Source: Epithemia pelagica
Taxonomy: Eukaryota; Protista; Bacillariophyta
Assembly: GCA_946965045.2 (NCBI GenBank)
Contig: OX337234.1
Span: 3,100,001-3,164,000, forward strand
DNA length: 64,000 nucleotides
Reading direction: 5' to 3'
Shown: piece by piece, positions 8,508-64,000 of the stretch
Numbering within the stretch: position 1 is the first letter of the stretch
How the letters are laid out: each line of letters opens with the position of its first letter
Made by a program: the position numbers and the translations under genes
Notes under the pieces: generated by a model
Told to the model about the DNA's origin: nothing
What the model saw: the letters and a program-made list of their open reading frames with translations, nothing else
The model's database searches: none

Positions 8508-9899
8508 ACCAGCATGGGAATGCTACGAGACGAGATAAGCCTTGAAAGACGTGGTGGGATCACGAGCTCCGTCATCGTCTGATTGCTTGTCACGAAAGTA
8601 TCTATTTGGAATAGAGAGTTGGTACTACCATAATGTACTAGCTGCTCCAAACTATGTTTCATGTGCTGACTGACTGATGCACCCGCAATGGAATAGGATT
8701 ACGAATACATACAACAGGTGGAATTCGAAAGACTTTGCATCTGTCGTCTTCTTGTCGATCTGAGAGACAAACAGGGAATCCTCTTCTTTCTATGATTGAG
8801 CACCAGTTCTGCAACATGGAAACAGAAACTATTCCTCCTATGGAAGGAGCGGATGCATACGTTATGCAACGATCTCTTCCTCTACCGTCGAAAAGGTGTG
8901 GAGGCAGCTAAGGAAGTCCCGGGAGACCAATCAGGCGTATGGCGCATTCAATTTTCCGCGACCAGATAAAAAGCCCAGTCAATTCCAGCTGACGAGTTGT
9001 TCTTCATTCCTCCGCAACTGCAATGGAGCGCATCTTTCACCACAAAATTTGCAATTGCAATTGCATCTCATCCCTTGCTTGTCTTTTGGGTGTCTTTTGC
9101 GCACTATGTTCAACGGAGGCAACCTCATGCCTCATGTACGGGAGTAGCGAGCAGATGGGGAAAGACAGGAACAGTTGCTTCAAATCGATGAAAGTGCAAA
9201 TCGTATCCAAAAGTGGGTGAGGTGGACAGGAAGTTCAAATGAAATTGCAACAATTATTTGACGTGTGGCAGAGGGCGAAACGACATTGTCCAACCACAAG
9301 CAACGGCACCATCCGTCCACGACATTCAATCATTGGCACTATGCACCAAAGACATGGAAACCAATTGCAAACGGTTCCTCGCACCATTGGACCTCATGGA
9401 TTCTTCCGTGGCCACGATGGTACGAAGAGGAATGGGAAAGCTTCATGGGATCGTCTCTTCAATGAATGCTAGGAAGGTGTTAGAGGAACGTAAAATAGAA
9501 TCTTGTCATTGCTTTGGCAACGCTTCTACCTAGTCATTAAACCAATGTTGTCGAAGAAAATGAATCTGGGAAGCTAATTTAATTGATCGGGCGGAAAGGT
9601 TCCCTTCTTCCATGGATCTATGGCATCCGCGTTTCCCCTCTTTTGTTTGAAGGAGGAGAGGCGCAGGACCGAGGATTGCACGACGGCAAGTTCTGAATGG
9701 TCATGAGTATCTGTTGCTGGATTCGATGAGTTACCATGTGTGTGTATGCATGTGCTGAAGAAGATTGAATGAGGTCAAAGTGCGTTACAGTGCAATTATT
9801 GGTATCGAGAAATGAATTGCTATGGAAACAAAGATTCGCCATTGCTGGAATCTTTGTCAATGAGAATATTTTGTGCAATAGCGGCAAGGCACTTAGCCA

Positions 9900-10790
9900 C
9901 TAGTCTTGCTGCGTGGATTCGTTCGCCTTCATGAGGCGAGCAGCCTTGCGGAGATCTTCTTGGACTTGGATGCGGTAGTACAGCTTACGAAACTCCTTGA
10001 GCTCTTGATCAGACAACAAGCCTTGCTTCTCCAACTCCTCCATGTCCCAAAAGTATTCTTCTTCCGCCTCTTCCTCGACGTGCTGTTCTTCTTCGTGTTC
10101 CTCCTCCTCCTCGTGATCTTCTTCTTCGTCGTCCTCTTCTTCGTCATGCAAGAGAGGATCGTGTTCTTCGGTGGAGGCTGTGCTACTGCCACTGCTGTTT
10201 TCCCATGTGGCCGCTGCAGCTCCTCCATTGTCGTCAATAATGGTGGGATCGTCCAAAATCATGACCACCTTTTGGGGGGGAACACGAGCCACTTTTTTCT
10301 TGATTTTCTTGATCCATTTTCGTCTCCTTCGTTGAGGAGATGGTTTCTTGAGGACCGAGCAAAGACCAGGAGGACTGTTGGGTGCGGCGGCTGCCAGTGT
10401 GGCTCGAGTGGGAGACACCACTCCATCCAGAGTGGCACTCGTCGTGGTGGATCGAGTCACAGATGTACTAGAATCACGAGATGAAATGGTCCGAGACGGT
10501 GAAGAAGCAATGGGATCTTGGAGAATGGCTGCTCGTGACTTGAGAAGTAACGAGGGCAAGGAAAAGGGTCGTCTCGTCGAAAGGCTGGTGTTCGAGCTCG
10601 AAGATACCACTTGTTGTCTTCTTGGAGTTGGAACAAGTGCAATGAGTTTGTTTCGATAAAATGCAGCAATCAAACCTTGAGGTTTTTCACGCTTCTCATA
10701 ACTGTCCGTGGTGTCGTTGGTTTTGTAGTTGTTTCGAGCTGCCGGTGGTTTGGCAATTCGATGATACGAACGAGTCAATGTACGAGCCAT
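9900..10790 (-). CDS. Hypothetical protein with a basic NLS-like patch, poly-acidic tract and YYRxQVxEDL motif
   Basis: ATG at 10790 (MARTL). Contains QRRRRKWIKKIKKK, an E/D-rich tract and C-terminal RKLYYRIQVQEDLRK. Confidence 0.7.
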   Translation of the reverse strand: MARTLTRSYHRIAKPPAARNNYKTNDTTDSYEKREKPQGLIAAFYRNKLIALVPTPRRQQVVSSSSNTSLSTRRPFSLPSLLLKSRAAILQDPIASSPSRTISSRDSSTSVTRSTTTSATLDGVVSPTRATLAAAAPNSPPGLCSVLKKPSPQRRRRKWIKKIKKKVARVPPQKVVMILDDPTIIDDNGGAAAATWENSSGSSTASTEEHDPLLHDEEEDDEEEDHEEEEEHEEEQHVEEEAEEEYFWDMEELEKQGLLSDQELKEFRKLYYRIQVQEDLRKAARLMKANESTQQD

Positions 10791-11509
10791 GGTGCCAATC
10801 GAATCCAATCCAATCCAAAAACAATTGTGCCAATGAACAAATCTTTACTTTCTTGACACCCTTTGTCGCCTTGCAGATCAAGGATTCGTTCTTGCAGTTG
10901 GTAGTAGAAGGTAGAAGGAGGGAGAGGTCAAAGGACGATAGACTCGGGCTTCAGAATCTTTTCAGGCGTGGATGGAACTCGCGTGAAGCCCAAACCGAAC
11001 GACACCGAATACTTTGTTGATGGGGTGTCTTTGTGGAGGCAAATTCCCACGTAATACTACTAAAAGGATCGAGAATTGTGCGAGACAACCCAACATCATC
11101 GGATGATTCATGATACCTTTGTTCTTGTATTGCAAGGAATGGAAACTATGACATGGATTCACCCGCATTGGCCAGCTGGATTCCGTTCTTTTGACATTGG
11201 TTGACGTGGAGTGACGACAAGAGGTGCAGCTGGTGAAAGATGCTGTATAATTATTTATCCGAACCATCTGTTGATGTCGCTTGTACTTTTTCTCTCACAC
11301 TATATTGTCTTTTGGCCGATGCGAAGAGCGATCAAGACGCGATCGAAAATATTGATCTTATCTGATAGCTACATAGTCTACCCCACCAATAATAAACAAA
11401 GGAGTACTCGAGGAGCCTCTCTAGAGATGGAGAAGAAGTAGATAGAGCGTACTACTTCCTCCCCTGTTAGGCCTAGGTAGGAGTTACTCCTATATCCACC
11501 ATATCCACC

Positions 11510-12718
11510 ATGACACTGCAAGAACAAGCATGGCAGTCGGGCCTTGTCCTTTTGAATGAGACCGCAGAATGGGATCTCGAGGACTGGCCTCCGCTTGAGG
11601 GTGGATGGCGTTCGTTTCATGCATCGGTCGTTCTCCATCATCCCGATACGTACAACAACGACGATAGCAACAACAACAACAACAGACAAACGGTCGTCGT
11701 GTTGGGAGGACGTCGGACAGATTCAGGCGAGCTCGATTCCGTTCTGTTATTGAATCTGGTAGACCCAAACAAGCGGTGGAGAGAAGGGCCACCCATGAAA
11801 AAGAGACGAAGTGGACATGCTGCTGTTGTGTGCAACGGGGGCATCTACGTAATGGGAGGAAGCGCGGAATATTCAAGTCTGGATTGTATGGAACGTATTG
11901 ATTCCACTTATTTGCTACAATCATCTGTAACTACAAGCATCACACAAGAGAGCCACTGGACAACAATGACATGTCGACTTTCAATGAAAAGAAATGAATG
12001 TTGTGCTGTTGCGGTGCACGATCGCTACATTGTTGTAATGGGTGGATGTGCAGCGGGTTCATGGAAATCGTCGTCAGTTGATGTTATTGATACTAGCAAC
12101 GAAACTGTCATTAAGGGACCATCCATGAACGTTCAACGAACACTTTTTGGCAGTGCGGTCATTGGTCATCGCATCTTTGTCGTTGGAGGTTGTTGGGAAC
12201 GTGAGTCGGTGGAGTATCTGGACGTTGCAAAGCTTTGTAACCATGAGGAGACAAAGGAGGACACGACTGCTCCAGTCCCTTTTTTCTCGTCCACTTGGAC
12301 CACTTATTATTCTCATTCGGTGCGTTCCGTCCCACGCATAACTTCATATGCAGTGGTGGCCGTCGGATCCTGTCTGGTTGTAGCGGAAGGGGACCGTCCA
12401 ACCGTGGAAATCTTTGATACGCACCACAACTGCGTGTGGAATCTCCCATCCATCGGAACTATGGAGAATGGCGCCAGTATGGTGACTCTTGGGAATCAAA
12501 TTGCACAGATTGGTGGGACTGAGAATCTGAGATGTCCAACATTACCACTAATGGACAAGAATACGTGGTGCTTTCGTCAACTCCTTGAACAAAAACCACA
12601 TGGATGCTTTCATTCTCGGGAAGGAATGGGTATCCGAGGTGCCAATGGAATATCCTGCACCACCCCGACGTCCAATCGTAAACGAGTGAGGACCAATACA
12701 GAAGAGGATGGCACTTGA
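11510..12718 (+). CDS. Kelch-repeat (beta-propeller) protein
   Basis: Repeated Kelch motifs VVVLGG, W.EGPPM.K.R.GHAAVV.NG.IYVMGG, IVVMGG, GPSMNVQR....AVIGHRIFVVGG. Confidence 0.9.
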   Translation: MTLQEQAWQSGLVLLNETAEWDLEDWPPLEGGWRSFHASVVLHHPDTYNNDDSNNNNNRQTVVVLGGRRTDSGELDSVLLLNLVDPNKRWREGPPMKKRRSGHAAVVCNGGIYVMGGSAEYSSLDCMERIDSTYLLQSSVTTSITQESHWTTMTCRLSMKRNECCAVAVHDRYIVVMGGCAAGSWKSSSVDVIDTSNETVIKGPSMNVQRTLFGSAVIGHRIFVVGGCWERESVEYLDVAKLCNHEETKEDTTAPVPFFSSTWTTYYSHSVRSVPRITSYAVVAVGSCLVVAEGDRPTVEIFDTHHNCVWNLPSIGTMENGASMVTLGNQIAQIGGTENLRCPTLPLMDKNTWCFRQLLEQKPHGCFHSREGMGIRGANGISCTTPTSNRKRVRTNTEEDGT

Positions 12719-13159
12719 ATGTGCAACAGTTTGCATTTCATGTCAAAACCTGAGGAAGCAATATCATGGCAATTATACTCTCCAACAGTTGTCATGTTTA
12801 CGTGACGAGATTTTAAGCTTTGATAAAGATCATGTCATTCCTTAGTTATGTTGTGAATCCTAAATTAGCTAATGGAAAGCTCCAACTCACTGTACAGGAT
12901 GGTTTGCTCGGTCGAAAAGACATGGCTCAAAGAGCAACTCCTTGCATGTTAGGAATGCATCATCCACCTTATACAGCATATGACCGACCGCATCCTTTGG
13001 AATTTCTGTCTCCGATGTGTGCTGGATCTTTCCTAATATGATGCCACTACCTATCAGGAGGTAGAGAGTTTTGCGCCAATGCTGCCATTGGTCTCAGCGT
13101 GGCGTTTTGACGTTTCATCAACGCACCAAAAGCACCAGCACTGTAAGACGTATACTAGT

Positions 13160-13480
13160 ATCATGGTCCAAAATGCCGTAGCCAGACAATCCCTGACTGA
13201 CATTCTCGTCCTGTAAAAACGGAATATGGACCAACACCAACACTAAACCAGCATTCATGTGATTGGCAAGCTGTGTGTTTCTTGAACGGTTTCGTTTATT
13301 CGTCGCCAATGGCCCCATTCATGAACTTACATGTTACACCGGCCTTACCAGCCTTGTCTCCGGCTGGATCGTATTGTGTAGGAAAGGGTTTCCTCCTATA
13401 TATTTTGGTCTTGCAGACAATGATATGGACCGTCTTGGGCAATCGTGTCCAAACACTTTCATGGAGTACCTTCTTTCAAT
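13160..13480 (-). pseudogene. Decayed copy of the 3' end and 3' UTR of the fatty-acid desaturase gene (~20720-21060)
   Basis: Its reverse complement aligns by eye with the desaturase C-terminus and its 3' flank. The antisense peptide SSPMAPFMNLHVTPALPALSPAGSYCVGKGF matches SSSMAPLVDFHVTPAWPALSAAGSYWVGKGF. Confidence 0.8.
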
Positions 13481-13739
13481 CCGCTCAGTTCCAAAGCTAG
13501 ACATTCTCCTCTATATATTCATGTCAAGGTTCCTGTAAATATCAAGGTTCCTGTGTTACGGTTGTAACGGAGGGACTCGCTGTGATGTGTACAGTTAGTT
13601 TTGTTGCTTCTCTAACTGGACAGGAAGGACTCTGGTCTGACTGTTGTGAAACGAGCCTTACCGAGACAAAATCTTTCCTAACGTGGAACGCTGAGACTGG
13701 GCCCACAAACCATCCTGGTGGTTGTTGTTGTTGCTGTTG

Positions 13740-14789
13740 TCAGAACGGAAGCCGATTACATCCCGGTGGAACCCTGGTGCGATTCGCCACATTGCCTCTC
13801 CCATAGCCATAGCTATAGCCATATCCATGCGTATTCAACTCGAAGAGCTGGTCAAAATGACAGGCCTTGTCAAAGCCCAACCACGACGATACCATGTCGT
13901 TGACAATGGTAATATTTTTGGTCCATTCCGAACTATTCAAGACAATCCATCGCTGCGGTCCACCCAACATGGTCGCCAAGTCCAACAAGTTTTGATTCAA
14001 ATGATGCGATTCTCGCACGACGGTAGGCAGGGTCTCCTGGATCCCAAAGACCCGTTTGGCCGACTTGGCCCGTTCCAAGGGATTCCGGATACTAATGATG
14101 AACCGTCCACAGGGAAATATTTCATTCAAAAACACGGCAGCCTCCCGAACCAAGTTCCATCGGGACTCGACGGTTGTACTTTGAGGGATCTGCGGAAAAC
14201 GGACGGTCTTGAACCCTACAATGGTGCCATGGTCGTCGTCATGATCCTGGTCATGATTTTGTGCTTGCTCTGGTTCGGGTGCAGCTGGTGGTGGAGTAAT
14301 GACTTCGACCATTTGTTGTGTGACACAGGCAAAATTGGACAGCGTGACTGGAAGGTGGGACCATGCGTCTAATGATGCTGCCTTCCATTGCGGGGCCGTT
14401 CGCGTCTGGTCAATGGCTCGTTGAAAGTTGTGGAGGACGCCATTGTTTTCGCCACTCAATCGAATGCCTGGCAAACTATTGAGCATGTACAATAAGGTGG
14501 TACTTCCCGAACGTCCGGCCGCCAAAATAATCAAGTAACGTCGTTTGCAGGGGTGACAAACAGCGGTGACTGGACAAGTGGCCTGGGGACACCAAGCCGC
14601 CTTGGCTCGGTTCGAAAGACCACCTTGTTGTTGTTCTTGTTCCTTAGTCGAGTGCCGTTGTGTCTCGAACGTCTCCGTAGGATGCAAGAGATGGTGGTGG
14701 TCGTGATCCTTGTTCTTGTTGCAGTTGGTGGTGGGTCTGAACCAGGAGGAATCTATAGCCAAAGACCACACCACGACATAGACCACCAA
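13740..14789 (-). CDS. Golgi-type (signal-anchored) sulfotransferase-family protein; start codon unresolved
   Basis: 5'-PAPS-binding-like motif LIILAAGRSGSTTLL followed by LNSLPGIRLSGE, GFKTVR and FIISIRNP. No in-frame ATG precedes the motif and there is an in-frame TGA about 7 codons upstream, so either a 5' exon is missing or this copy is also a pseudogene. Confidence 0.7.
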   Translation of the reverse strand: MVVYVVVWSLAIDSSWFRPTTNCNKNKDHDHHHLLHPTETFETQRHSTKEQEQQQGGLSNRAKAAWCPQATCPVTAVCHPCKRRYLIILAAGRSGSTTLLYMLNSLPGIRLSGENNGVLHNFQRAIDQTRTAPQWKAASLDAWSHLPVTLSNFACVTQQMVEVITPPPAAPEPEQAQNHDQDHDDDHGTIVGFKTVRFPQIPQSTTVESRWNLVREAAVFLNEIFPCGRFIISIRNPLERAKSAKRVFGIQETLPTVVRESHHLNQNLLDLATMLGGPQRWIVLNSSEWTKNITIVNDMVSSWLGFDKACHFDQLFELNTHGYGYSYGYGRGNVANRTRVPPGCNRLPF

Positions 14790-15364
14790 TATGGAGACGA
14801 GGGATCGTTGTCAAAAGTTTAAAAATCGTAACGTTTGGTGATCTGTGACGTTCTTTCTGGTGGATCTATGCGAACGATAGATGAAAGAAGAAGGCATACC
14901 CAATACCCATCAGACAACAACCCAAAGGCCAAAGGGTCGACTGTCGAGACTCGAGACTCTCTCCATTGACGTTTGACGTGAAAGCCAGGTCTACTAGTAG
15001 TAGGAGTAGCTACCTTAGTAGGAGGAGTTTCTACTCCTAGCTAGGTGTAGTAGTTTCATCCAGTGACGAAATAAACCTTGTTCTACTTCTACTCCTACAT
15101 TCTAGTTACGCAACAGGACAATACCTGTACAGGAAGGTCTTATGTACAAGTTGAGTACATGAATATCAACGAGGAGCACATCATTGTTTGGAGGATCGGA
15201 TCGAGAAAAAGAAGAAAGGTCAACGCCACCCCAACGGGACATTTCCGCCTGGAACATGACTGGAACACGACAACAACCTTGTCAATGCCACGAGAGCGTT
15301 TGAGATCCATGGTACCCTGCGAAGCCAAGTTTGATAAACCCAAGAAGGAGGATATGGGACACGT

Positions 15365-17612
15365 CTACGAAAGGGTTGCAGGTACTACTCGTTCCTGGGC
15401 ACCAAATTCTCGTTTCAAAATGTCCACCAACACGGGAAGTAAATGTTCGTCGTCCAGTGGAACGGCATGGGGAAGGTAGGGTTCTGTAGCTAATTGCTGT
15501 CGAACCGTAGATCCATTTTCATTTACCACTGTTTGACGAACAAAGATTTTGCACCCCGGAACTGCTTTGGGCGACGTTTGTGGAGTTGTGTCATTGTCGT
15601 CCTTGGTCGCTGTCGAGATGGGTCGTTTGGCCGGTGCCCCCATGAGACCAATATCGGCCACTTGCGCTTGTCCACAGGAATTGGGACACCCCGTCCAATG
15701 AATGTAAATGGGCCGATTCATAGTGACACGCAATTCCAATTCCCGGGCCAAGCGCTCGGCATACGCCTTGGTTTCAATCAAGGCCAATCCGCAAAACTCG
15801 GCCCCGGTACAACTCACTGTATGACCTTCCATCCGACCAATCGATTCCGCCTTGAGACGACGACTGGATTGCAAGGCGGGTTCGGCCAACAAGGCGGGAA
15901 CACGGTCCCGATCCACATTGGGTAACAGCACATTTTGATCCACCGTCAAACGAACTTCTCCATGGGAATAGGCATCGGCCAAATCGGCCAGGTCCCGACA
16001 TTCCTGTACACTGAGACGACCCACGGGTACCAAAATGCCCACGCGTACCTTGTTGGGTTGCGATTGCGGATGGACGCCCAACAAGGACGGTGGTGGACCG
16101 ACACTACTTTTGTTCGTTGTGGTGTCCACTGGCGGCTGTGCCACATCGACGTGACGGGCCACCTCGGGGTTTAATGCGTGGAGGTTTTGCAGGACCCGTT
16201 CGCGAAAGGCTGGCATGCCATAGTCTTGGACCAGCCACCAGAATCGTGCCTTTTGACGATGGTGACGACTTCCCTCATTTCGAAAGAGTTGTAACAAGAC
16301 GTGACACAAGGCCACGACCGATTCGACCTCTGCCGGAATCCACAGGTTGGCCGACACGGCCGTGGCGACACGCGTGGCCGACAAGTATCCTCCCACCACC
16401 ACATTGAATCCCACCTGGCCGGACCGACCGTGGCGACAGGGTTGCAATCCCAAATCATTGACATTGGTATGAATGGAATCGTGTCCTCCTTCCACAACGG
16501 GTGCTCCCGCAATGGCAATATTGAATTTGCGGGGCAAATTGGCCCATTGGGGATTGCCTCGTGTTTGTGTTTGGGCATCCCAACAAACGAGATGGTCCAC
16601 GGCTTGACAAAAGGGTCGAGTATCGACCAATTCATGGTCATGGTCCAAACCGGCCAAGGGACTTCCGACAATGTTGCGGACATTGTCCATGGCAGATTGA
16701 AACGAGGTTTGATTGTGGACGGCATGCAATTCCTGTATGAGACGGGGCGCATCGGGCAAGCCAATGCCGCGCAATTGAATATTGGCCCGTGTGGTGAGAT
16801 CCACCACACCATGCGTCGGACCGTAGGGTTCGACGGCCGAGGCATAAAACCGCAATTGATGCGACGTGACAATGCCATTGGGAACGCGCAACCGCATCAT
16901 GAATTGGCCCGGTGTACGTTTCTTGCGATGCAACAATCCGACCCATTTGAGACGCTATATATTTTATATATATGTGAAGCGCAAAAATACCATTCCCACC
17001 CATCGTTCGCGCATTGAAAAGAGAGAGAGAGAGAGAATGAGTGAGGAGCCTGAAAATCCAACGAGGCCGTTTGAAATTCCACAAGCCTACATTTCCAGAA
17101 GGACTATCTCACGAATCCAAACCACGTACCGTATCAAGATCGGCCGCTTCCACTTGATCCCAGGTCAATTCTCCCTGACGAATTTTGCGGGCATAATCAT
17201 AAATATCCACAAAGGCCTGCGTCGGATCCTTGGCCAGTTTGACCTGTTCCACTGGATTGCTCCTCTGGCTGTTTTGGACTCGTTGGAGGGTCTCCTCGGG
17301 CAAAAAGGAGACAGCCGTCGCCTTGTTAATGGGAGCCGACCGCTCGAGATCCTCCGGATCGTCCGTGTGGTTGGGGTGGTGACGGTTCTGGCATGCCAAC
17401 AGGCTCCTCCTCGAACGACGTTCTGGGTGCTCCCTGTTGTTCTTCTTGTGGTTTCGGAGCCCGTAGTCGTCGACATTGCTCGGAAGGAAGCCGTGTGACA
17501 CACGAGCTGATGGTACTCGGAGCCGCAGCAAAAACCCTTGGCCGACCATGCAACGGGTCCAAAACAACAATGTCCATGGCAATAACAACACAACGCGACC
17601 GGCCGCAAACAT
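15365..17612 (-). CDS. NiR: Ferredoxin-nitrite reductase, predicted plastid-targeted; join(17130..17612, 15365..16954)
   Basis: Motifs MMRLRVPNG, DLTTRANIQLRG, NLPRKFNIA, SCTGAEFCGLA and IHWTGCPNSCGQ (siroheme/4Fe-4S ligands). A 175-bp GT-AG intron at 16955-17129 joins DLDT|RLKWVG in frame. N-terminal signal peptide ends ...GQG-F (ASAF-like). Confidence 0.93.
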
Positions 17613-19446
17613 GGTTCAAACAAAACAAGAACAACAATACGACCTTTTTCTGCTTCTACCAAATTTGCATCGCAGTTGTGTCAATGAGGAATGGGAGATT
17701 CATCTGAGCCGACAATTCATCTCAAACCATCTATTGTACACCAAAAAGTGCCGGAGGAAGCAGTTTGGTGTCATCAAAAAGTGGACACTGACCTGTCATG
17801 GTCACGCAAAGATACTGCCGCGTATGCCGCCTCGTTTTGGTCTTGTTGGGATAAGCCCCTCCCACGAAGCTCGCGAGCAAGCATGGTTTTCCCCCAAAAT
17901 CACACCTGATCGCTGCCTCTTCGATAGGAACGCAATATCCAAAACAAATTGGGAAGTCAAATCGCTGGGGATCAAGGAGTCCCAAAAATTGTGTGACGGG
18001 GTTCGGCTTCGCACCCCATGCATGAGGATGACCTTGTCGGTTGTCGGACATGTTGCATTGAACCCAAGCAAACCAACAAACGAAGCAATAGAAGAGCACT
18101 TTTCGAATTGCCTCATTCCACCTCCTGAAGGACGTGTCGACATACAGTTTTCTTATACCTATTCACCAAAGATGCCTCCTTGTATGTCAACCGATCGACT
18201 CACTTGTTCCACTGGTGCCAGTCTCTCTCCTACACTCCCACGGACCCTATCGCCCAAGCAACAGAAGACGAACAACAACCAAAAAGCAAGAACACGACGA
18301 GCATCACTTCCAGTCTGGCTGCGGACTGTCATGATCTTGTACTTTTGGTCGCAGGTTCGAGTGAATGAAAACGACGTCTTGCATCCTCATCCCTGTTTCA
18401 ACAAGACCCGCATCGTGGCTTCGCAACGTTACTAAGAATCACGAACGGGAGAAGAAGGGCACGAACGCATACAGTTTGGAGGACCAGCAGGGACAATCAC
18501 CACAAATGACCAGGGACACACACACACACACATGGGGCCGTGAACCGAGGGTTGTGGTTGGTTTCGCAGGAGAAATGACTTATCACCAGGTGTGGTCTGC
18601 TCCCGAACCATGTTTGAGGTACAGTTCCAAACGTTGCGGTACCCTTCCATGTTCTGTATTGGATGGTGCGGGGGGTATCACATATACCTGCAGTGTGTGT
18701 GACGAGTGCAGGGTCCTTCTCCGGACAACTCGAGACTTGACAGATGTGTGTGTCTCTCTCATTTGCCAAAAGCTCCTAGAGATACTGGAGTACGGGAGTT
18801 TTAGAACAGTTTGAGTAGTTGTAATACAAAAGAATAGATCGCTTTCTCTTGGCCACTCTTCAAATGAATCACTCGCGATGTATGTTCGAAGCCAACTGGT
18901 AGTTGTGTATGCACCACAAGGGACTTGTGTTCCACAACAGGATCCAGTTCTTGTCAACACAAGACGACGATTCGAGTCTGATAATCCTCGTCCAAACATC
19001 TACACCTAGTTGCCTGTCCAAGTGGTGTGCCATGCTAGGTAGAGTTCGACGAGTTCCATCATGGCCGGGATACTTTGCGTCGTCTTGATCCCATCGTCCT
19101 TCCGAACCAGAGTCAGTCGCTCCAAACTCATTCCAATCGCTTATGGCTCTTACGTAGTCGCCCTTAACTGGAATCTTCGCCTTTGTCGACACAACACAGC
19201 ACATGCCGACTGCTGCCGAATGCCAACCACGTAAGCCAAGTATGTACTTGTTGGGGATGAGGTATCTTGAGTTTTCTCATTGTTGTTGTGGTTGTTGTTG
19301 TTTTGTTGGTTGGTGGTGTTGTCGTCAGCTGTTGTTCTGCCATCCAATCCTCATACACCACTCGCCGTTGCATTTACTTTTGTGGGTTCGTTCGTTAGTA
19401 GCGAGGGAGCCAAAGAACAAAAACAAACGATATCATCATCATCATC

Positions 19447-55572: not shown

Positions 55573-56341
55573 AGTTAAAGTACGGCTAGCTATAGACCTA
55601 GAACTACCTTTCGAAGAACAACACCTAGACTCTATGAGAGTACACGTCTACCATGACATAGCTGTGCCATCTGTCCTGCAAGCTTGTGCGAACACGTGCG
55701 TGGACGGCTGACGAAGCTGTGCCCATGTATGTGACATGTCCGAGCCTGCGGCACAATGTTCCCTCTCTGAATAACCCTGGTGTTTTGTGATACACATTTA
55801 CATATGCCCACTACTATCTACGACAGGCAAAAGCCGGACGAGCTCCACTCGGAAGCAAAGTCCAGGCTATGTCTCACCTAAAACATACACGTCTCCAACT
55901 TACAACAAGATTCACCAAAGGATCATGGATACTTGGTTCAAGCCAATAGTTCCGCCTCTATCCCTCACAGTTTGAGTATATGGAACAGGTTCTATGCACT
56001 AAGAGAACAAGTTCCATTAGTCCCTAAACGTAGAGCGTCTGTAGCGCCTTACCTAGAAGTCAAAGATGTTTCTTCACCGGGCCCAACGATTCGGGAAAAG
56101 TAAACTCTTTATGACTGAAAGGAAGTAATGAAAGAGCAATCATGAGAAACAAACACTTTCGATAGAATAAGCTCACTTCTTATAAAAACCTGAAAGTTGT
56201 AAGCAACCTTTAGGAAGGAGTCAACCATACTAACCTAGTACAAGGTGAGGGCCCCATCGTGTACCGAGTGAACTGGTTGACTACAGAAGTTCAGAGCACT
56301 AACCATCACGTCTTACGTTAGTTTTTCTACATACATTAAGT
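55573..56341 (+). repeat. 3' LTR (769 bp)
   Basis: Direct repeat of the 5' LTR, followed by TSD GACAG. Confidence 0.95.
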
Positions 56342-56346
56342 GACAG

Positions 56347-56966
56347 CAACCTTTACCATTCCTCCTGATAGTGTGGATGCCGCCCTGCATGCAAAAATCA
56401 TTCATTTGGGTGGAACTGGACTCTTAACCAAGTTCGACGGTCCGCCATCAAGAGAATTGTTGAAGAGAGCCAAGGAACTGGGGCGGACCACCGTGTTTGA
56501 CCTGATTCTAGCGGATTCAAAGACGATTGATTTGGTGGAACCTCTATTGCCCTACATTGACTACTTTGTCCCATCCATTGTGGAGGCAGCCGTCATGGCT
56601 GGCCTTGAGGACAGTCGAGATGCACCTGCCATTGCCCAGTTTTTCAAATCAAAGGGAGCCAAGACTGTCATTTTGACCATGGACAAGGACGGAGTCTATG
56701 TCCATCCTGCACAAGACGAGGTGGCACCGTTTACCGTACCTGCGCACGAAATTTCAGTGGTCGATACCACCGGTTGCGGGGATAGCTTCACGGCTGGTGT
56801 GATTGTGGGAATCTCACAAGGATGGGACTTGCCGAAAACGATTCGGTTTGCCAATGCCGTTGCCGCACAAGTCGCCCAAGGATTAGGCTCGGATGGAAAT
56901 GGCAAACTATCTTCCCTGGAAAGTACGCTTGCGTTCATGGAGATAACGCCGCTCACAACAGCATGA
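56347..56966 (+). pseudogene. PfkB-family carbohydrate kinase, 3' part, separated from its 5' part by the retrotransposon
   Basis: Motifs GRTTVFDL, IDYFVPSIVEA and VILTMDKDG, plus PfkB signature VVDTTGCGDSFTAG and FANAVAA. Confidence 0.88.
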
Positions 56967-57528: not shown

Positions 57529-58068
57529 ATGGCCAATCAAGTACCAGATGAAGAATTGCGTGAACGATTAAAGTCGCAATGGGAGTTTATCATCTTGACA
57601 TCAGCCTTTATGGCAGCCGTGGCCGTCACCTTTTTGGTAGCCAACGAACCCGAGGACAATCAATACGACACACTCTGGGAAGTTTTTGTCACGTTGAATG
57701 CCGCCTCCTTCATTTCCTTGATTGTGGCTGTGGTCCAATGCACATGCTTCTTGACCACCCTCATGATGTGTCCACCAGGCAAGGCGCAAGAGGCCCTGTC
57801 CAAACTACGGTTCGTGGAACCCTTTCCCAGTATTTTGCTCTTTGTCAGCATCTTGGCCTTTGCATCGTCGGTTCCTATTTACATGATTTTGCAGTTTGGT
57901 CATGCCACAAGCAGCTTTATCATTCACATTATTACCGCCGTGTTGGGATTGTCGGGAATTATGTTGTTTGCGTACAATATGGGAGTACAAGCCAGTCTGC
58001 TACAAGACGATGCAGGAGCCTATCCTGGTGGTGCTCCCCGAGAGACCTTTGCAGATGATGGACAATAG
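57529..58068 (+). CDS. Small four-TM membrane protein (PGG/Orai-like topology, family unassigned)
   Basis: ATG at 57529. Four hydrophobic helices (FIILTSAFMAAVAVTFLV; VFVTLNAASFISLIVAVV; ILLFVSILAFASSVPIYMIL; FIIHIITAVLGLSGIMLF). Confidence 0.65.
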   Translation: MANQVPDEELRERLKSQWEFIILTSAFMAAVAVTFLVANEPEDNQYDTLWEVFVTLNAASFISLIVAVVQCTCFLTTLMMCPPGKAQEALSKLRFVEPFPSILLFVSILAFASSVPIYMILQFGHATSSFIIHIITAVLGLSGIMLFAYNMGVQASLLQDDAGAYPGGAPRETFADDGQ

Positions 58069-58718
58069 TTAGTACAAGGTAGTACTGTTCCTTCTCAAGA
58101 GGAAATGGAGAGTCTTTTATTAGCTTGCCCTCTCTGGAAGGTGCCTTTGAACGATTCGGAAATGAGATCCAGACTAGGTATTCTTTTGATGTATCGATCC
58201 AATAATTGGAGATAACTCCTAATTGTTGTGGTGATCCTCCCACTCATGACTTTCACCGCCCAATCGCCCATTCTCGGATTCATTTACTCGCTGCCATCAT
58301 CTCTTGAATCGCCCGACCCCTGTTTGGGGCGGTCCGAACCTGCTTTTGAAACCAGAGCGTCAATTGGTACTCCTACCTAGTACATTTCCTACGGTCTATC
58401 TCGATAGTCAATGTTTGTTACGTCTACTCCTACAGGAGTGTATTTGCAGGAAACACATAGACTCTACTAGGACATACAAGCTGAGTTCAGGGAGTATGTT
58501 CCTGACGTAGACCCCTCGTAGATTTAGTACCATAAAATATAATCCTCAATAGCGTTTGGCCTGACTAGTGAATGAAAGTGTCCGACTCGTGACAACCCAG
58601 TGTCTGAATAATAAATTTTTTATTCGTACCGTGATGTGTGACAGCTTCCGAACGCTAGAATTCCGTCGAAAATGATGAAAAAACGGTTGTTGTCTAACGA
58701 CCATGGTGAAGGGCCATC

Positions 58719-58807
58719 CCAACCGCAAACGATGTTGCCGAGCTGCATCCGGACGCTTTAGGGTTTACTTGAAACACCCCCAACGGGGCAACATCGTTTG
58801 CGGTTGG
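58719..58807. repeat. Perfect 21-bp inverted repeat with a 47-nt spacer just upstream of the transposase
   Basis: ccaaccgcaaacgatgttgcc (58719-58739) and ggcaacatcgtttgcggttgg (58787-58807). Confidence 0.92.
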
Positions 58808-58860
58808 CATCATCCTCAATGACACGATCATCGGACCCAACCGACGAAACACAGTCTCGG

Positions 58861-61800
58861 ATGGAACGAAGTTTATCTACGAAAGAGGTTCTTGACGTTT
58901 TCAAGACGCGATGCTCCCCAACCTCGTTTGGATACTGCGACAAGTGGATCCAAGACACCAACATTGTAGGATACATGAGCACTTGGTTGCCAGGACTGTC
59001 AACAACCAGACTGCATCTTGTTTTGTCTAAAGATGTTGTCCTTAAACTCTGTTTCGAAGCTGAGACGTCGGAACCAAACAAGTTTGGCTGGTACCGCCAC
59101 AAAGTCACAATCCAAAAGAAAAGATACACATTCTTTTATGTAAGCTCCGACACAACAACACGGCCAGTGATATTCGACGATCACCAAGAATGGCTGGAGG
59201 CTGCAGAAACGAACACGATTCGGCGGTCGGGACGAGCGAAGCCAACGAAGCAAAGGAACGAAGAGTCACCAGGGTTGCGTGAAGGCACGCTAAATACATC
59301 CAAGCAAGCAAGAAACACTTCAACTCCACCAGCAATCAAGAGCACTGCAACGCAGCAACATGGTCAACCGCCACAAATTGGAGACAGCCCTACCGAAATG
59401 CAAACGTCACCACCTCACGACAACACAAATCAGGTGCTTGTTGGAGCAATCCAACATCCTGAATTGGCCACAGACGAAATCGGCCATGACCATCCACAGA
59501 GTTTGCTGATTGGTTTTTCAGTTTTCAAGAGTGAGATGATCCAAGGTCTATCGCAACAAATGGAAAGCGCCTATTTTGATGAGCCAAGGAACCGTAGGCT
59601 CTTTGCCGGCAAATGCGATTCTCCAGGATCGTCAAAACGAAATCTTGAGCGATGGTTAGAAACCCTTGAAAGGGCCATTTCCAACGTGGAGGCACTTCCA
59701 AATGTGGTTAACAAGGGAGACATCTTCCCCCTCAACCAGGAACAGCAACAAAGGGTACTGCTCAAGGCAACGTATTTACAACTTTCTTATAAGATAGCGT
59801 TGCTTGATATGCCACACGGTCGTACATGGCTGAACTGCATAAGCGAAGCCATTAGCAAAATGGAACAGATTTATGGTGAAAAAGTAAAAAAACATCCCAA
59901 GACCATTGCTCGTTTTCACAGGTACTTTCGAGAAAACGACAGTTTCCCTCATCCCAACTACCACGTTCATATTGGGAAAGAGCCATCGCCCGTCTTATTC
60001 GTTCATATACCTGAAGCAAAGGTAAAGTTTGAATGCTGGGCAAAGGAAAACCTGAGCACTCTTACAACAGAGTCTGCTCTAATGTACCTGAGGACAACAT
60101 TGCTTCCGGATATGCATACCATGATCGTACAAGAGTGCATGGATACGAATGCAACGCCAGTATCGTACGAGGCCTTCTTGGCATCGATGAAGCTTTCCAC
60201 CATTTTGCAAAGCACAGCGTGGCGATGTATTGCTGCTGCAGGGTTCGTTTCAAGGAACACACGAAAACATACTTCACTGATCGACACGAAAATGCTGAGA
60301 ATGTTGCCCACAGAGCTGCTTTTGTCAAGAAGTACTTTAAGTGGGAAGAGCTGTCGTATCGGTGGGTGCAGCTCCCTACCGAGGATGCAATCAAACTTGA
60401 AAACGAAGGGAATGCGGGTAAGGAGAAGCTCTTGCCAAACAGCTTTGTATTTGAGTACACTGATGTAACAACAGGCAAGCAGATGCGGGAGTACCATGTT
60501 GATGCCTTCCCAAGCGAATTTGAACGGTACATCAAACCAGAAAACACAATTCACAATGGAAACTTGTCACACAGGTTTCCCTCCGACCGCAAACCTGTCA
60601 TCCTCATCGGCCAGGACGAATCGATCTACAAGCAGTTTTCCTTCTCGTCTAAGGCATGGTACACTAAAGATGGCGCAACTAAAATGCTGCCAAAGGATGA
60701 TGGACATGGGATGATGATCAGCGCTTTTGTAAGCCGATCATGGGGCTTCCTTATGAACGGAAACCCGTTGCTTGCTGCGAGTCTATTTCGGATTAATGAA
60801 CTCCGTCTACATGCGACACACAACAAATACGTCTCTACCGCTACCGAGGCTGCAGTGAACCTCAATGGTCACACTGCCAAGACTCCAATTACCAATGCCC
60901 AACCGTTCACTCGCTTTTTTGAATACGGAGCAGATAAAGAGGGATATTGGAATTATGAATACATGGCCTTGCAGTTGGAGGATATTGTCGATTGCCTGGT
61001 GGTCATGTTCCCCGCCCATGACTTTGTCTTTTTGTTCGACCAAAGCAGTGGTCATGGAAAACAACAATCCGATGGGTTAAATGCTCTGAACATGAATAAC
61101 GACTGGGGAGGAGCTGTTCCCAGCATGCGGGACACACAAATTATTGATCAAGCTTGCCTTGGCCCGTACAACCATGACGACAAACTACGAGTTGGTGACG
61201 TACAACACCTCGTCTATCAGGAGAACGATCGTGGTCCAGTTGCTAAAAAAGGCCATCGTCTCAATGACGCGCAGCGTGTCGCATCGAAGAATACACACCG
61301 AACTGGTAGAAAGAAAAAGCGCAACCTCACAAAGAAGGAGCTCATGGCAAAACTTGTCCGGGTCATGGGACCTGGAATGCAACGTTCATTTCAATCGAAA
61401 AATGCTGGTGAACTACAGGACCTTTGTAAACGCTCCAACATTGCAACGGTGATTGAAGATGATGTGATCGAGGAAGGCTGGATGAATGCTGCAAAAGGGC
61501 TCTTTCAAGTGTTATGGGAGCGGGGGTGGATAGACCCTAACAACATGATCAAGTACGTCAAGACAACCAGAGATGCATGGTTGGAAGCGGATAAGAAGAC
61601 TGTGAAAGAAGCCTATCAGGCGGACTACAAAAAGTACTCTATGGTTCATCTGATGAGCGAATGCTCCGATTTCAAGAACGAAAAATCTGCAATGGAGAAG
61701 CTGGCGGAAGACTTGTCTGAACGACATCGTTGCAGGATCAAGATTCTCGTATCGACCAAGTATCACTGTGAAATGGCCGGTGAGGGGATCGAGTATGGCT

Positions 61801-62132
61801 GGGGTTACTCAAAAAAAGTCTTTCGTGCTTTCTCACTGAATGAGAAGAAAGACAAAGCTGCCTTTTTACGATGTTTGACAGCGAGCCTGAAGAAAACAAC
61901 ACCCGAAATCATGCGGAAAATGTCAGCAAAGGCACGTCGCTATATGCTCGCGTACTTGTTATACGATCAAAATTCCAACAACAGAGACTATGCAGCTGCG
62001 GGCCTCTCGTATGCCGAAATTGAAAAGATGTCAAAAGCAATCAAGTGTCACCGATCCGCCTTCGACCAAGATCATGGCTTCATCTCACGTCTCTGGAGAG
62101 AAACGCAAGGATCTGGTGCAGTAGAAACCTGA
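58861..62132 (+). mobile_element. IS630/Tc1/mariner-like DDE transposase gene (~1,090 aa) split by a -1 frameshift at ~60246
   Basis: Catalytic motifs IGQDES (D, 60615), FLFDQSSGH (D, 61038) and KYHCEMAGEGIEYGWG (E, 61791). Also GYWN, VLWERGWID and an HTH-like STAWR..AAAGF/RFKEHTK.YFTDRHE that spans the two overlapping ORFs. Confidence 0.85.
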
Positions 62133-62541
62133 TCTAATCTCCATTTATCATCAAAATGCATGTAACTTTCTATTTATAACAGCAATCCATTTTATTGAAT
62201 GTATTTCTTGTCAGTTATTGGTATCAATGATCACTTCCGTGTTGCGTGCTCGTGTTGCGTGTTGGATTATCAGTTTGTAAGTACCTCGAAAATGTGAGAG
62301 AGCGAGAAAATGGACGATTTTCGGAGCAGACCTCGCGCGAAACACGCCTCCCTCTCCGAAAACGCGCACGCATCGCAAAACTGGCACGCAAATCCTTAAG
62401 TAACTCAGCCCACATACCAAAACTTCACCGTTTTTTAGTATGTGAGCTCAAGATTTTTTTTGGAATGTGAGCTGAGGGCTGAGGAGAATGCTGCGTTTCG
62501 TGTTTCTTGTGTTTCGTGTTTCGAGTTTTTGCGTTTCGACC

Positions 62542-63828
62542 ATGGGGAAACCAAGCCCTAAGAAACAGTATTCAAAAGCAGGCGCTCAAAAACGAGACAG
62601 CATGAGTGACAAAGGAAATCTTGACGCTCTTATACTTGCAATAGATGCAGCGGAAGAGCAGTCAGCCAAAGCAGCAGCGGCGCCCGAAGCAGCAGCAGCC
62701 GCAGCACCCGAAGCAGCAGCAACAGACGAAGCGACAACAACAAAGCACCATCGGTTTCTTTCGGATCAAGACTTTGCCGAAGTGAAGGATAAAAAGCTTG
62801 CAGATGTTCGGCGTGGCCATCCAGAGAAGGACCACAGCAAACAGTATTCGGAAACTCAAATGCGGCAGCTCCTCACCGATACGCGCACAGCGGACTACAA
62901 GAAAGGCGTCGTCGAGGAAGTGGAGAAACTCCCTTCTCGTTCTGGACGGGATCCAATCAGGACTTTCACCGAAGGCCTCAAGACGCTCTCCAAGATCAAA
63001 GACAGTGCTGTACTTGCCTGTGCTATAGGAGAGTATGTCTCACGGAAGATTTCGGCCACTTTTTCGGTCAAAGAAGCTCCAATTCGGAAGCCCGGTTCTG
63101 GCTTGCAAAAGGGGAAGATTGTGCCACTTTCGGGTGGAATGGGTCTCCCTGTCAAGAAGAACAGAAAACATACCTTCCCGATCGGCAAGCATGTCGGTTA
63201 CACATTTGCGAACAATCCGGTAGTCAAGATCTACCTTGGAAAAGTGCTTCTGTTTGAGGTGAAGGAGTCAAAACTCCCAGGCGCCGGGTTTGGCGTTTTT
63301 GCAGTTCGGACAATCAAAGATGGTGAAGTGATTGGCGCGTACACAGGAAACGACGTCACGTCTCGGACAGTTGTACCCAACGAGTACGCGATTCAGTTTG
63401 GACGTGACAATCGAAGGCTTCAAGCAGACAACGACGATCACTTCGGCATGGGGCTGCACTTAATCAACGACCACATACACCATCGGTACGGTACAGACAA
63501 TCCACCGGATGAATCGGATGATCAATACAACGTGAGAATCATGCCAAATCTTCTAGTCAAGGCAATCAAGCCGATCGAAAAGGGCGGCGAGCTGTCTTTG
63601 TTTTATTGTAGGAGTACTTGGTTTGTCGGGGAGTCTGTGCGTCGCCCCCCGGCCTTCGCTGTGGACTGTGGACCCGACGAGTCTTGGTCGCCGTGGGGTG
63701 ATCACCGGGAAATACTCACCCCCGCTGGGGGGTACACCGTAACCACAACAACAGATTTTTGTGCAATGAGCAAAGGAAACAATCGTAGAAATCATCATGT
63801 CGAGCGACGAGCAAGGAAACATGTCTGA
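62542..63828 (+). CDS. SET-domain protein (putative lysine methyltransferase) with a basic N-terminal region
   Basis: ATG at 62542 (MGKPSPKK). SET motifs VKESKLPGAGFGVFA, IGAYTG, GLHLINDH (variant of RFxNH) and AIKPIEKGGELSLFY. Confidence 0.8.
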   Translation: MGKPSPKKQYSKAGAQKRDSMSDKGNLDALILAIDAAEEQSAKAAAAPEAAAAAAPEAAATDEATTTKHHRFLSDQDFAEVKDKKLADVRRGHPEKDHSKQYSETQMRQLLTDTRTADYKKGVVEEVEKLPSRSGRDPIRTFTEGLKTLSKIKDSAVLACAIGEYVSRKISATFSVKEAPIRKPGSGLQKGKIVPLSGGMGLPVKKNRKHTFPIGKHVGYTFANNPVVKIYLGKVLLFEVKESKLPGAGFGVFAVRTIKDGEVIGAYTGNDVTSRTVVPNEYAIQFGRDNRRLQADNDDHFGMGLHLINDHIHHRYGTDNPPDESDDQYNVRIMPNLLVKAIKPIEKGGELSLFYCRSTWFVGESVRRPPAFAVDCGPDESWSPWGDHREILTPAGGYTVTTTTDFCAMSKGNNRRNHHVERRARKHV

Positions 63829-64000
63829 GCAAAGTGTTTGGGTCAAGGTCATCCGAAAAACGGGCGGAGACAATTATGAGGACCTCGGAGATCCGTTTCA
63901 GATAGTGCCGCGTCCGGCGAACGTGAGTCACTTGCGCGAGAAAGTCAAGGAAGAGGCGGCAAACAACCTTGCGCATGTTGACGCTAATGAACTCCTTGTG
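63821..64000 (+). CDS. Crinkler (CRN)-type N-terminal header domain gene, truncated by the window end
   Basis: Not in the supplied ORF track. Manual translation gives MSEQSVWVKVIRKTGGDNYEDLGDPFQIVPRPANVSHLREKVKEEAANNLAHVDANELLV, matching the VWV...G.PF....V..L...VK......VDA..L.V pattern of CR N-terminal ubiquitin-like domains. Confidence 0.7.
   Translation, partial: MSEQSVWVKVIRKTGGDNYEDLGDPFQIVPRPANVSHLREKVKEEAANNLAHVDANELLV

Follow-up and report, generated by a model that had tools for sequence, protein, structure and literature searches.

A SET-domain gene carried by a very probable DNA transposon of the diatom Epithemia pelagica, and a truncated copy of that transposon beside a Crinkler-like array

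Towards the end of a 64,000 nt stretch of the diatom Epithemia pelagica (contig OX337234.1, positions 3,100,001–3,164,000, forward strand), which as a whole is referred to here as the window, lie three closely spaced plus-strand genes that a first-pass annotation took tentatively for a single mobile unit, a DDE transposase carrying as cargo both a SET-domain gene and a Crinkler effector gene. Comparison with other copies leads to a different picture, the structural parts of which can, taken jointly, be held with considerable confidence. There is very probably a cut-and-paste DNA transposon of 9.73 kb which encodes a transposase, a SET protein and a small third protein, ORF3; the copy in the window is a truncated one, and the Crinkler-like gene beside it is not cargo. 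Of the proposed cargo-carrying unit the association of transposase with SET gene survives, while the inclusion of the Crinkler-like gene does not, and the window copy itself is a truncated relic. Tight co-directional packing at this locus did not equal one unit, the Crinkler-like gene being a neighbour.

The copies that reveal the element were taken from an assembly of the same genome, ENA ERZ21939226. The transposase cluster comprises 43 distinct sequences, and one of these, P0072 (1088 amino acids), recurs unchanged at five sites, each on a contig of its own and amid unrelated neighbouring genes (L002–L006). What the five loci have in common is exactly the block 9609–19337 (9729 bp), at 99.95–99.99% identity, with no likeness outside it. 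The block is bounded by 36-bp imperfect terminal inverted repeats (TIRs), in which 33 of the 36 positions match and whose outermost dinucleotide is TA on both sides. Because five near-identical copies occupy five different sites, the family has evidently moved recently in this genome. Its genes, in the coordinates of L002, are these.

10001–13267, plus strand: transposase, 1088 amino acids (P0072)
13680–16529, plus strand: SET protein, 949 amino acids, with the SET domain at residues 248–355
18134–18706, plus strand: ORF3, 190 amino acids, near the right end

That the transposon carries the SET gene is supported by the position of that gene inside the TIRs in all five near-identical copies, in a variant copy of the same gene layout (L007) and in a second family (L008), a remnant of it being present in a third (L009). 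Might it nevertheless be a host gene, beside which, or beside whose paralogues, such transposons merely insert? In the window there is indeed nothing but adjacency to go by. However, a gene that lies between TIRs within a block which recurs, 99.9% identical, at five sites whose flanks are unrelated, and that does likewise in family 2, makes that idea so improbable that it can practically be set aside. The variant copy is instructive in its own right. Compared with L002, its left 5.6 kb are 95.7% identical; from 15043 rightwards the overall identity is 89.6%, the middle being far more divergent, while ORF3 and the right end, and indeed both ends of the element, are >99% identical. Such a mosaic suggests recombination between element subfamilies.

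With regard to the target site, the copy in L003 is the informative one, since its insertion point falls within a unit of a 34-bp tandem repeat (flanks 9581–9608 and 19338–19374). The neighbouring intact unit reads ...cc-TA-gaa and the interrupted one ...cc-TA-element-TA-gaa, i.e., the neighbour serves as a pseudo-empty site. Because the intact repeat unit has a single TA where the interrupted unit has two, we infer a TA target-site duplication. TIRs with TA at both ends are found in families 1 and 2 (L008) and also in two 3.6-kb relatives, L013 and L019, every copy of the four families having the dinucleotide on either side. Two things need to be set on the other side of the balance: among the loci compared no true empty site or empty allele turned up, the duplication being read from that one pseudo-empty site, and every one of the seven copies in which a right end is preserved (L002–L008) has a G directly after its right-hand TA. 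The base that precedes the left-hand TA is variable in family 1, and the ends of the L013 family read G-TA...TA-C. The G beside the TA may reflect a target preference wider than TA.

What, then, is the copy in the window? Its similarity to the intact element starts exactly at the left TIR, base 1 of which is window position 58475, and ends at 63606. The features of this part of the window, from left to right, are as follows.

58035–58412, strand not applicable: left flank of the transposon, resembling the spacer of a tandem array of Crinkler-like (CRN-like) genes
58475–63606, plus strand: truncated copy, the left 5.1 kb of the 9.73-kb TIR DNA transposon, 96.8% identical to L002 9609–14741
58475–58510, plus strand: left TIR, 36 bp, first bases TA; an inverted match, 33/36, to the right TIR of the intact copies
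58716–58810, plus strand: subterminal hairpin, 24-nt arms and 47-nt loop, upstream of the transposase start
58861–62132, plus strand: predicted DDE transposase gene, one frameshift, otherwise full length
62542–63828, plus strand: SET-domain gene, truncated; residues 1–354 of the 949-amino-acid element protein, then unrelated read-through at 63607–63828
63286–63606, plus strand: SET domain (Pfam PF00856), residues 267–373 of the open reading frame (ORF)
63702–64000, strand not applicable: right flank of the transposon, resembling the start of other CRN-like array units
63797–64000, plus strand: N-terminus of the Crinkler-like gene (636 amino acids in the allele L001); evidently host array DNA, outside the element

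The earlier description of the layout proved accurate. The three plus-strand ORFs are where it put them, the transposase reaching 62132 and the SET gene beginning 410 bp later at 62542, which is the start codon homologous to that of the other copies (a second in-frame ATG lies upstream at 62488), and the third ORF beginning at the ATG at 63797, where it overlaps the SET stop (63828) before continuing past the window end. The left end, which had been predicted to fall within 58300–58720, is at 58475 and starts with TA. No TIR separates transposase and SET gene, as had been remarked, the match at 58475 being the sole one in the window; the 16-nt terminal motif occurs once there, against a chance expectation of 0.41 even with 3 mismatches allowed. 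The base composition is in no way remarkable, and comparison of the region from 58 to 64 kb with the rest of the window disclosed no second copy of any part of it.

Searching with intact P0072 (tblastn) recovers the window transposase as 2 pieces in 2 frames that together span residues 1–1088 at 94.6% identity; in further searches the two pieces were used separately. It is 97–99% identical to the allelic protein P0001 introduced below and keeps the conserved D/D/E columns. The SET ORF falls in the same 90% cluster as the SET ORFs of the other copies and matches residues 1–354 of 949, the likeness ending right after the last SET motif, and its tail past 63606 has no counterpart in the SET protein that intact copies encode. 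Missing from the window, and equally from L001, L010 and L011, are the final 4.6 kb of the element, in which ORF3 and the right TIR would lie, and a right TIR sought downstream is lacking within 13.5 kb (L001) or 21 kb (L011, i.e., ctg1360l, which overlaps the last 1284 bases of the window at 100% and extends the window 3′). Because it has a frameshifted transposase, a cut SET gene, no ORF3 and no right TIR, the window copy, which is ~3% diverged from the intact element, is to all appearances a relic that cannot move.

Its best protein match, P0001, leads to L001 (ENA ERZ21939226, contig ctg1356l). As the order of sequence in L001 is that of the window on either side, the identity being 96.4% in 7.5 kb of upstream sequence and 99% in the 7.7 kb that span the genes at issue, L001 is evidently the other-haplotype allele of the window locus and not an independent copy; it differs in a 10.5-kb insertion, which is present in the window and missing from L001. 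The transposases of the two alleles (58861–62132 in the window, 10001–13268 in L001) have one frameshift each, and it is not the same one. Because the alleles carry different frameshifts, the old insertion probably had an open transposase on arrival, which then decayed separately on the two haplotypes. The transposon evidently inserted in the spacer ahead of the first unit of the CRN-like array, and its right part, together with some array spacer, would most likely have gone in a subsequent deletion. A difficulty for such a deletion is that the 95 bp at 63607–63701 match none of the fetched loci. Could the window copy instead be a chimera, its right half exchanged for array DNA, that intact copies still mobilise in trans? 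The variant L007, with its ends so like those of L002 and its middle so divergent, does attest to recombining subfamilies. Nevertheless a chimera of that sort is very unlikely, in that no right TIR occurs anywhere in the fetched continuation, the window copy with its flanks is single in the data apart from its allele, and both alleles are frameshifted, differently, in the transposase, as expected of an old immobile relic.

The Crinkler-like gene calls for separate consideration, since the annotation that first drew attention to the locus would have one transposon with transposase, SET gene and Crinkler-like gene together, and with its right end beyond the window. The co-directional and tightly packed ORFs favour that arrangement and the same order is found in L001; however, L001, being the other-haplotype allele, is no independent copy. 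Against it, too, are the end of element similarity at 63606, the six full copies and two further families in which there is no CRN-like sequence, the failure to meet a right TIR over the downstream distances given above, and the membership of the gene in a local array, the spacer of which is met again at the left edge of the transposon. This three-gene arrangement is accordingly extremely improbable. A giant composite element that would include the whole CRN array was considered as well, and was rejected on account of the missing right TIR and the spacer-like left flank. The annotation had itself named, as what would tell against its proposal, other transposase copies without SET and CRN neighbours: the other copies do lack the CRN neighbour and do have the SET gene. 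A third co-directional gene is present in intact elements, but there it is the unrelated 190-amino-acid ORF3 and not a CRN gene.

A few kb downstream of the gene, on both haplotypes, are paralogues of 805 and 908 amino acids, in a tandem array whose units are 97–99% identical (L010, L011). A spacer that resembles the left flank of the transposon comes after each array unit, and four such spacers in L010 and L011 align with the flank in question, window 58035–58412 (378 bp), over 405 columns at 74.6% identity. On the other side, the right flank from 63702 is 92% identical to L011 14779–15090, and 63812–64000 is 96% identical to two further array units. Among the loci compared CRN-like sequence is present only in L001, L010 and L011, with none in L002–L009, and there is none elsewhere in the window. 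The gene in L001 is an intact ORF of 636 amino acids, and its product does not resemble the last 600 residues of the SET protein of the element. Because element similarity stops at 63606, because other copies are without CRN, and because the gene is a unit of the array, the Crinkler-like gene at 63797 is evidently the first unit of a host tandem array and not cargo. The array is interleaved with a Glyco_transf_92 gene. On the window haplotype its first unit is split in two by one Copia-type insertion past the window end, and on the other haplotype that unit is intact.

How Crinkler-like is it? The claim of a Crinkler header did not hold up at the level of Pfam thresholds, the match to the N-terminal family PF20147 being at E=0.05 and 14.8 bits against a cut-off of 24.6; the scores obtained are 14.8–14.9 bits (E about 0.05), and in the family at large E<0.1 is attained by only 3 of 12 members. 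There is an LxLFLAK-like stretch, LLVFAPDK, at the expected position (about residues 65–72), and some members give weak matches to P-loop ATPase families, 4 of the 12 to ATPase_2 (best E 2.5e-4) and 2 to AAA_16, all below threshold. A P-loop ATPase architecture is reported for over a quarter of CR C-termini, and the CRN genes of Phytophthora are described as tandem and hit by retrotransposons (PMC5289972). The resemblance to Crinkler proteins consists, then, in the weak N-terminal match, the LxLFLAK-like stretch and those weak ATPase matches, and the array resembles the Phytophthora genes in its tandem arrangement and its retrotransposon insertion, but unlike the case with Crinkler proteins proper every Pfam match is below threshold. 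A search of the PDB brought no relative to light.

The gene content of related elements bears on when the SET gene was acquired. Near the right end of all SET-bearing families is ORF3, a plus-strand gene of 165–190 amino acids that is 41–63% identical among three families and has no Pfam match. In family 1, that of the intact copies, it is absent from the automatic gene calls. Its positions in the other two are as follows.

L008, 15856–16395, plus strand: ORF3 of SET-bearing family 2
L009, 17515–18012, plus strand: ORF3 of SET-bearing family 3

The minus-strand ORFs called as genes in the right part of the element were discarded as candidates, since they are not conserved between families, the conserved signal there being the plus-strand ORF3. 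A conserved partner gene has been brought to light. Family 2 (L008) has a transposase, P0007, that belongs to a cluster of 25 members and is 46% identical to that of the window. The element is ~7 kb, with 58-nt TIRs that open with the motif TAC(A/G)AGCTG as in family 1; its SET protein, of 408 amino acids, is 29% identical to the window SET, with which it has the invariant columns in common, and its ORF3 is 41% identical. Family 3 (L009), whose transposase P0008 is also given as 46% identical to that of the window, keeps the SET remnant and an ORF3 63% identical to that of L008.

More distant relatives, at ~32% transposase identity, are 3.6-kb single-gene elements. P0041 belongs to one of 3569 bp with 22-nt TIRs and a transposase gene only, copies of which are 99.9–100% identical and have different flanks in several metagenomes, and KAI2506364.1, from the diatom Fragilaria crotonensis, is the product of the only gene in a 3.6-kb element that has 55-nt TIRs and lacks SET. 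The nearest metagenomic relatives of the transposase, L020 and L021 (41% identity), are on 5-kb contigs, too short to reveal a following SET. From the contrast between the SET-bearing families and these simple single-gene distant relatives, SET plus ORF3 is evidently a derived addition, yet an old one, within one clade.

The SET assignment itself, which the annotation had made for the second gene, was borne out. Against a Pfam cut-off of 22.4 bits, the PF00856 scores are 26.6 for the window, 26.7 for L002, 28.4 for L007 and 25.7 for L008, and a profile made from six transposon SET sequences matches the PR/SET domains of MECOM (3.4e-5) and PRDM2 (2.1e-4), and EZH2 (3e-4). A word-indexed protein search with the SET region returned two close relatives only. 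Because it has been kept in three families with 46% transposase identity, a role for the SET protein in the life of the element can be argued, and we infer that it is an element-encoded lysine methyltransferase kept because it is useful to the element.

Some observations detract from this. Where canonical SET proteins have NH, each of the six transposon sequences has ND, and GxG, present in family 1, is degenerate in family 2. Nor is there help from short-range comparison of L002, L007 (a mosaic) and the window, where the ratio of non-synonymous to synonymous change (dN/dS) is 0.43–0.53 for SET, on very few changes, and 1.54 for the transposase. These same features, dN/dS not being clearly below 1, would be at home with a SET that is a mere passenger, a captured host fragment in the course of decay with no role for the element; so would the faster divergence of SET (~30% identity, against 46% for the transposase relative to that of the window and 41% for ORF3), and the many SET ORFs in the cluster that are short fragments. 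Yet a decaying passenger would hardly be found at the same position and in the same orientation in three families whose transposases are ~46% identical, nor with full-length ORFs in all recently moved copies, nor with 22 columns invariant in the six sequences, the terminal EL...Y with its tyrosine included, nor passing the Pfam SET threshold independently in both families. On balance a passenger is unlikely.

If the SET protein does have a role for the element, what might that be? The mechanism preferred here, though only tentatively, is that it would write a chromatin mark at or near element copies, and so counter host silencing or keep element genes expressed. Self-limitation through a repressive mark is less likely, as is the tethering of integration to particular chromatin.

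The combination of a SET domain with a transposase of this general sort brings to mind SETMAR, a primate fusion of a SET gene with the Hsmar1 mariner transposase which is a single, domesticated and immobile host gene. The likeness is that both pair a SET domain with a Tc1/mariner-type transposase; the difference is that here there are two separate genes in a recently moved transposon, and in SETMAR one fused, immobile one. To our knowledge the SET-mariner combination is otherwise known only as that domesticated gene. One may conceive, with rather more doubt than assurance, of a giant Tc1-like clade in diatom-type genomes that has kept transposase, a divergent PR/SET-like methyltransferase and ORF3 through long divergence, as a free-living counterpart of SETMAR. 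If this is true, methyl marking of chromatin or protein by the element belongs to its own life cycle.

SET genes in transposons are not without precedent in stramenopiles. They have been noted in HarbingerS and Phytophthora MuDR families (Repbase Reports 2014, as cited in PMC12730594) and in a Phytophthora infestans proto-Helentron (PMC4067079), and a counter-silencing rationale has already been proposed for SET-encoding transposons (PMC12730594). What the present element has in common with those of oomycetes is a stramenopile transposon with its own SET gene beside the gene for a transposition enzyme. Compared by description, it is unlike them in that the enzyme is a predicted Tc1-like DDE transposase rather than a Harbinger, Mutator or Rep/helicase one, and in its PR/SET-like domain with ND for NH and its conserved ORF3 partner. 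In the oomycete Harbinger, Mutator and Helentron-type elements the SET genes are mostly the subject of database reports, and here such a gene is met in a Tc1-like lineage. In the literature searched, which did not cover Repbase, neither a Tc1-like element that has a SET gene nor any such element in diatoms was found described.

By functional analogy there is also kinship with the fungal DNA transposons that encode TET/JBP dioxygenases (PMC12730594) and with the VANDAL anti-silencing factors of plants (as cited in PMC12730594), these being cases of a DNA transposon gene that acts on epigenetic marks, though the enzyme class and the transposon superfamilies are unlike. Transposons with a chromatin-modifying enzyme of their own bear direct witness to the conflict in which mobile DNA and host silencing are engaged, and as the family has apparently moved recently and there are intact and dead copies in one genome, comparisons of expression and of chromatin marks between copies are feasible.

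To what class does the transposase belong? A profile of 25 relatives finds, among 1.84 billion representatives from public genomes and metagenomes, 1,834 clusters (50% identity) at E≤1e-30, a number that rises to 14,112 at E≤0.001. This reveals a very large transposase family for which there is no model in Pfam, and to which none of the libraries searched gives a family name. Invariant in 25 of the 25 relatives are, in P0072 numbering, D586 as D-E-S, D725 with D(4)H (H730), and E976 with E(2)W (W979). D-E-S, D(4)H and E(2)W are the three Tc1/mariner signature spacings. Confident AlphaFold models, for which the mean predicted local distance difference test scores are 79.7 and 74.4, place D586 on the first strand, D725 at the end of a later strand and E976 on a helix, in the manner of an RNase-H fold. 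A Foldseek search against BFVD, a library of viral structures, aligned 714 columns (E=1.7e-13, probability 1.00) with an 805-amino-acid Sylvanvirus protein named ‘Tc1-like transposase DDE domain-containing protein’, the sole significant fold match. Because of the D/D/E motifs, the TA ends and that fold match, the enzyme is predicted to be a Tc1-like one of RNase-H fold, and to represent a giant divergent branch near IS630-Tc1-mariner. D586, D725 and E976 would be its likely triad, with which it would excise the element at its TIRs and insert it at TA.

This placement has several results to contend with. No Pfam match to DDE_3, Transposase_1, DDE_1, HTH_Tnp_Tc3 or the like is obtained with the transposase even at E≤1, nor was a Pfam transposase domain present in any of the relatives scanned. 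PDB sequence and profile searches gave no meaningful match. A fold search of the PDB puts RNase HIII and Mos1 on top, the best transposases being Mos1 and Sleeping Beauty, with matches to those two that are not significant (E 0.1–1, probability up to 0.82); the full-length model gives nothing significant there and the model of the catalytic part does little better. With hhalign, a single pogo-like DDE_1 ORF (probability 0.4%) and a Harbinger-like ORF, at locus L012, gave nothing, single-sequence targets being weak ones.

In the IS630-Tc1-mariner superfamily the spacing from the second D to the E or D is 34–41 in classic families, and the transposase is about 340–600 amino acids long. For Sailor the spacing is 82 (PMC8533490). 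Set beside that superfamily, the present family is alike in its TIRs, the TA at both ends, D-E-S, D(4)H, E(2)W and the predicted RNase-H fold. It is unlike in an enzyme ~three times longer (1088 amino acids), with ~250 residues between D725 and E976 and without a Pfam match, and in its elements of 3.6–9.7 kb, which in the SET-bearing clade have three genes. By the marks of membership, the DDE triad on an RNase-H-like fold and significant fold similarity are present, and a profile match and the customary spacing and length are absent. The designation of the first window gene as a DDE transposase is, then, upheld by its D/D/E columns and by fold, and qualified by its having no Pfam family and by its reading in two frames.

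The hairpin at 58716–58810 has arms that are 96% complementary and a fold z-score of −5.2. It is not confined to the window. Counterparts with arms of 19–25 nt and loops of 25–50 nt are in L008 (9816–9902), L013 (928–998) and L019 (10082–10156), 170–340 bp inside the left end; in all four families the hairpin is close to where the transposase gene begins, and in three of them it precedes that gene. Fold z-scores across the four range from −3.2 to −6.7, and among these families, with transposases 32–46% identical, the arms have no sequence similarity. The hairpin may be a regulatory or transposase-binding structure.

A further mobile element lies to the left of the locus. The segment 45847–56341 of the window, missing from L001, is a Ty1/Copia-type long terminal repeat retrotransposon with direct repeats at 100% identity for 300 bp or more. 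It has a single ORF of 2881 amino acids (RVT_2, integrase, gag-pre-integrase), in which ~1800 residues without an above-threshold Pfam match precede the integrase, and it sits within a PfkB-family kinase gene, the C-terminal part of which is window 56340–56966.

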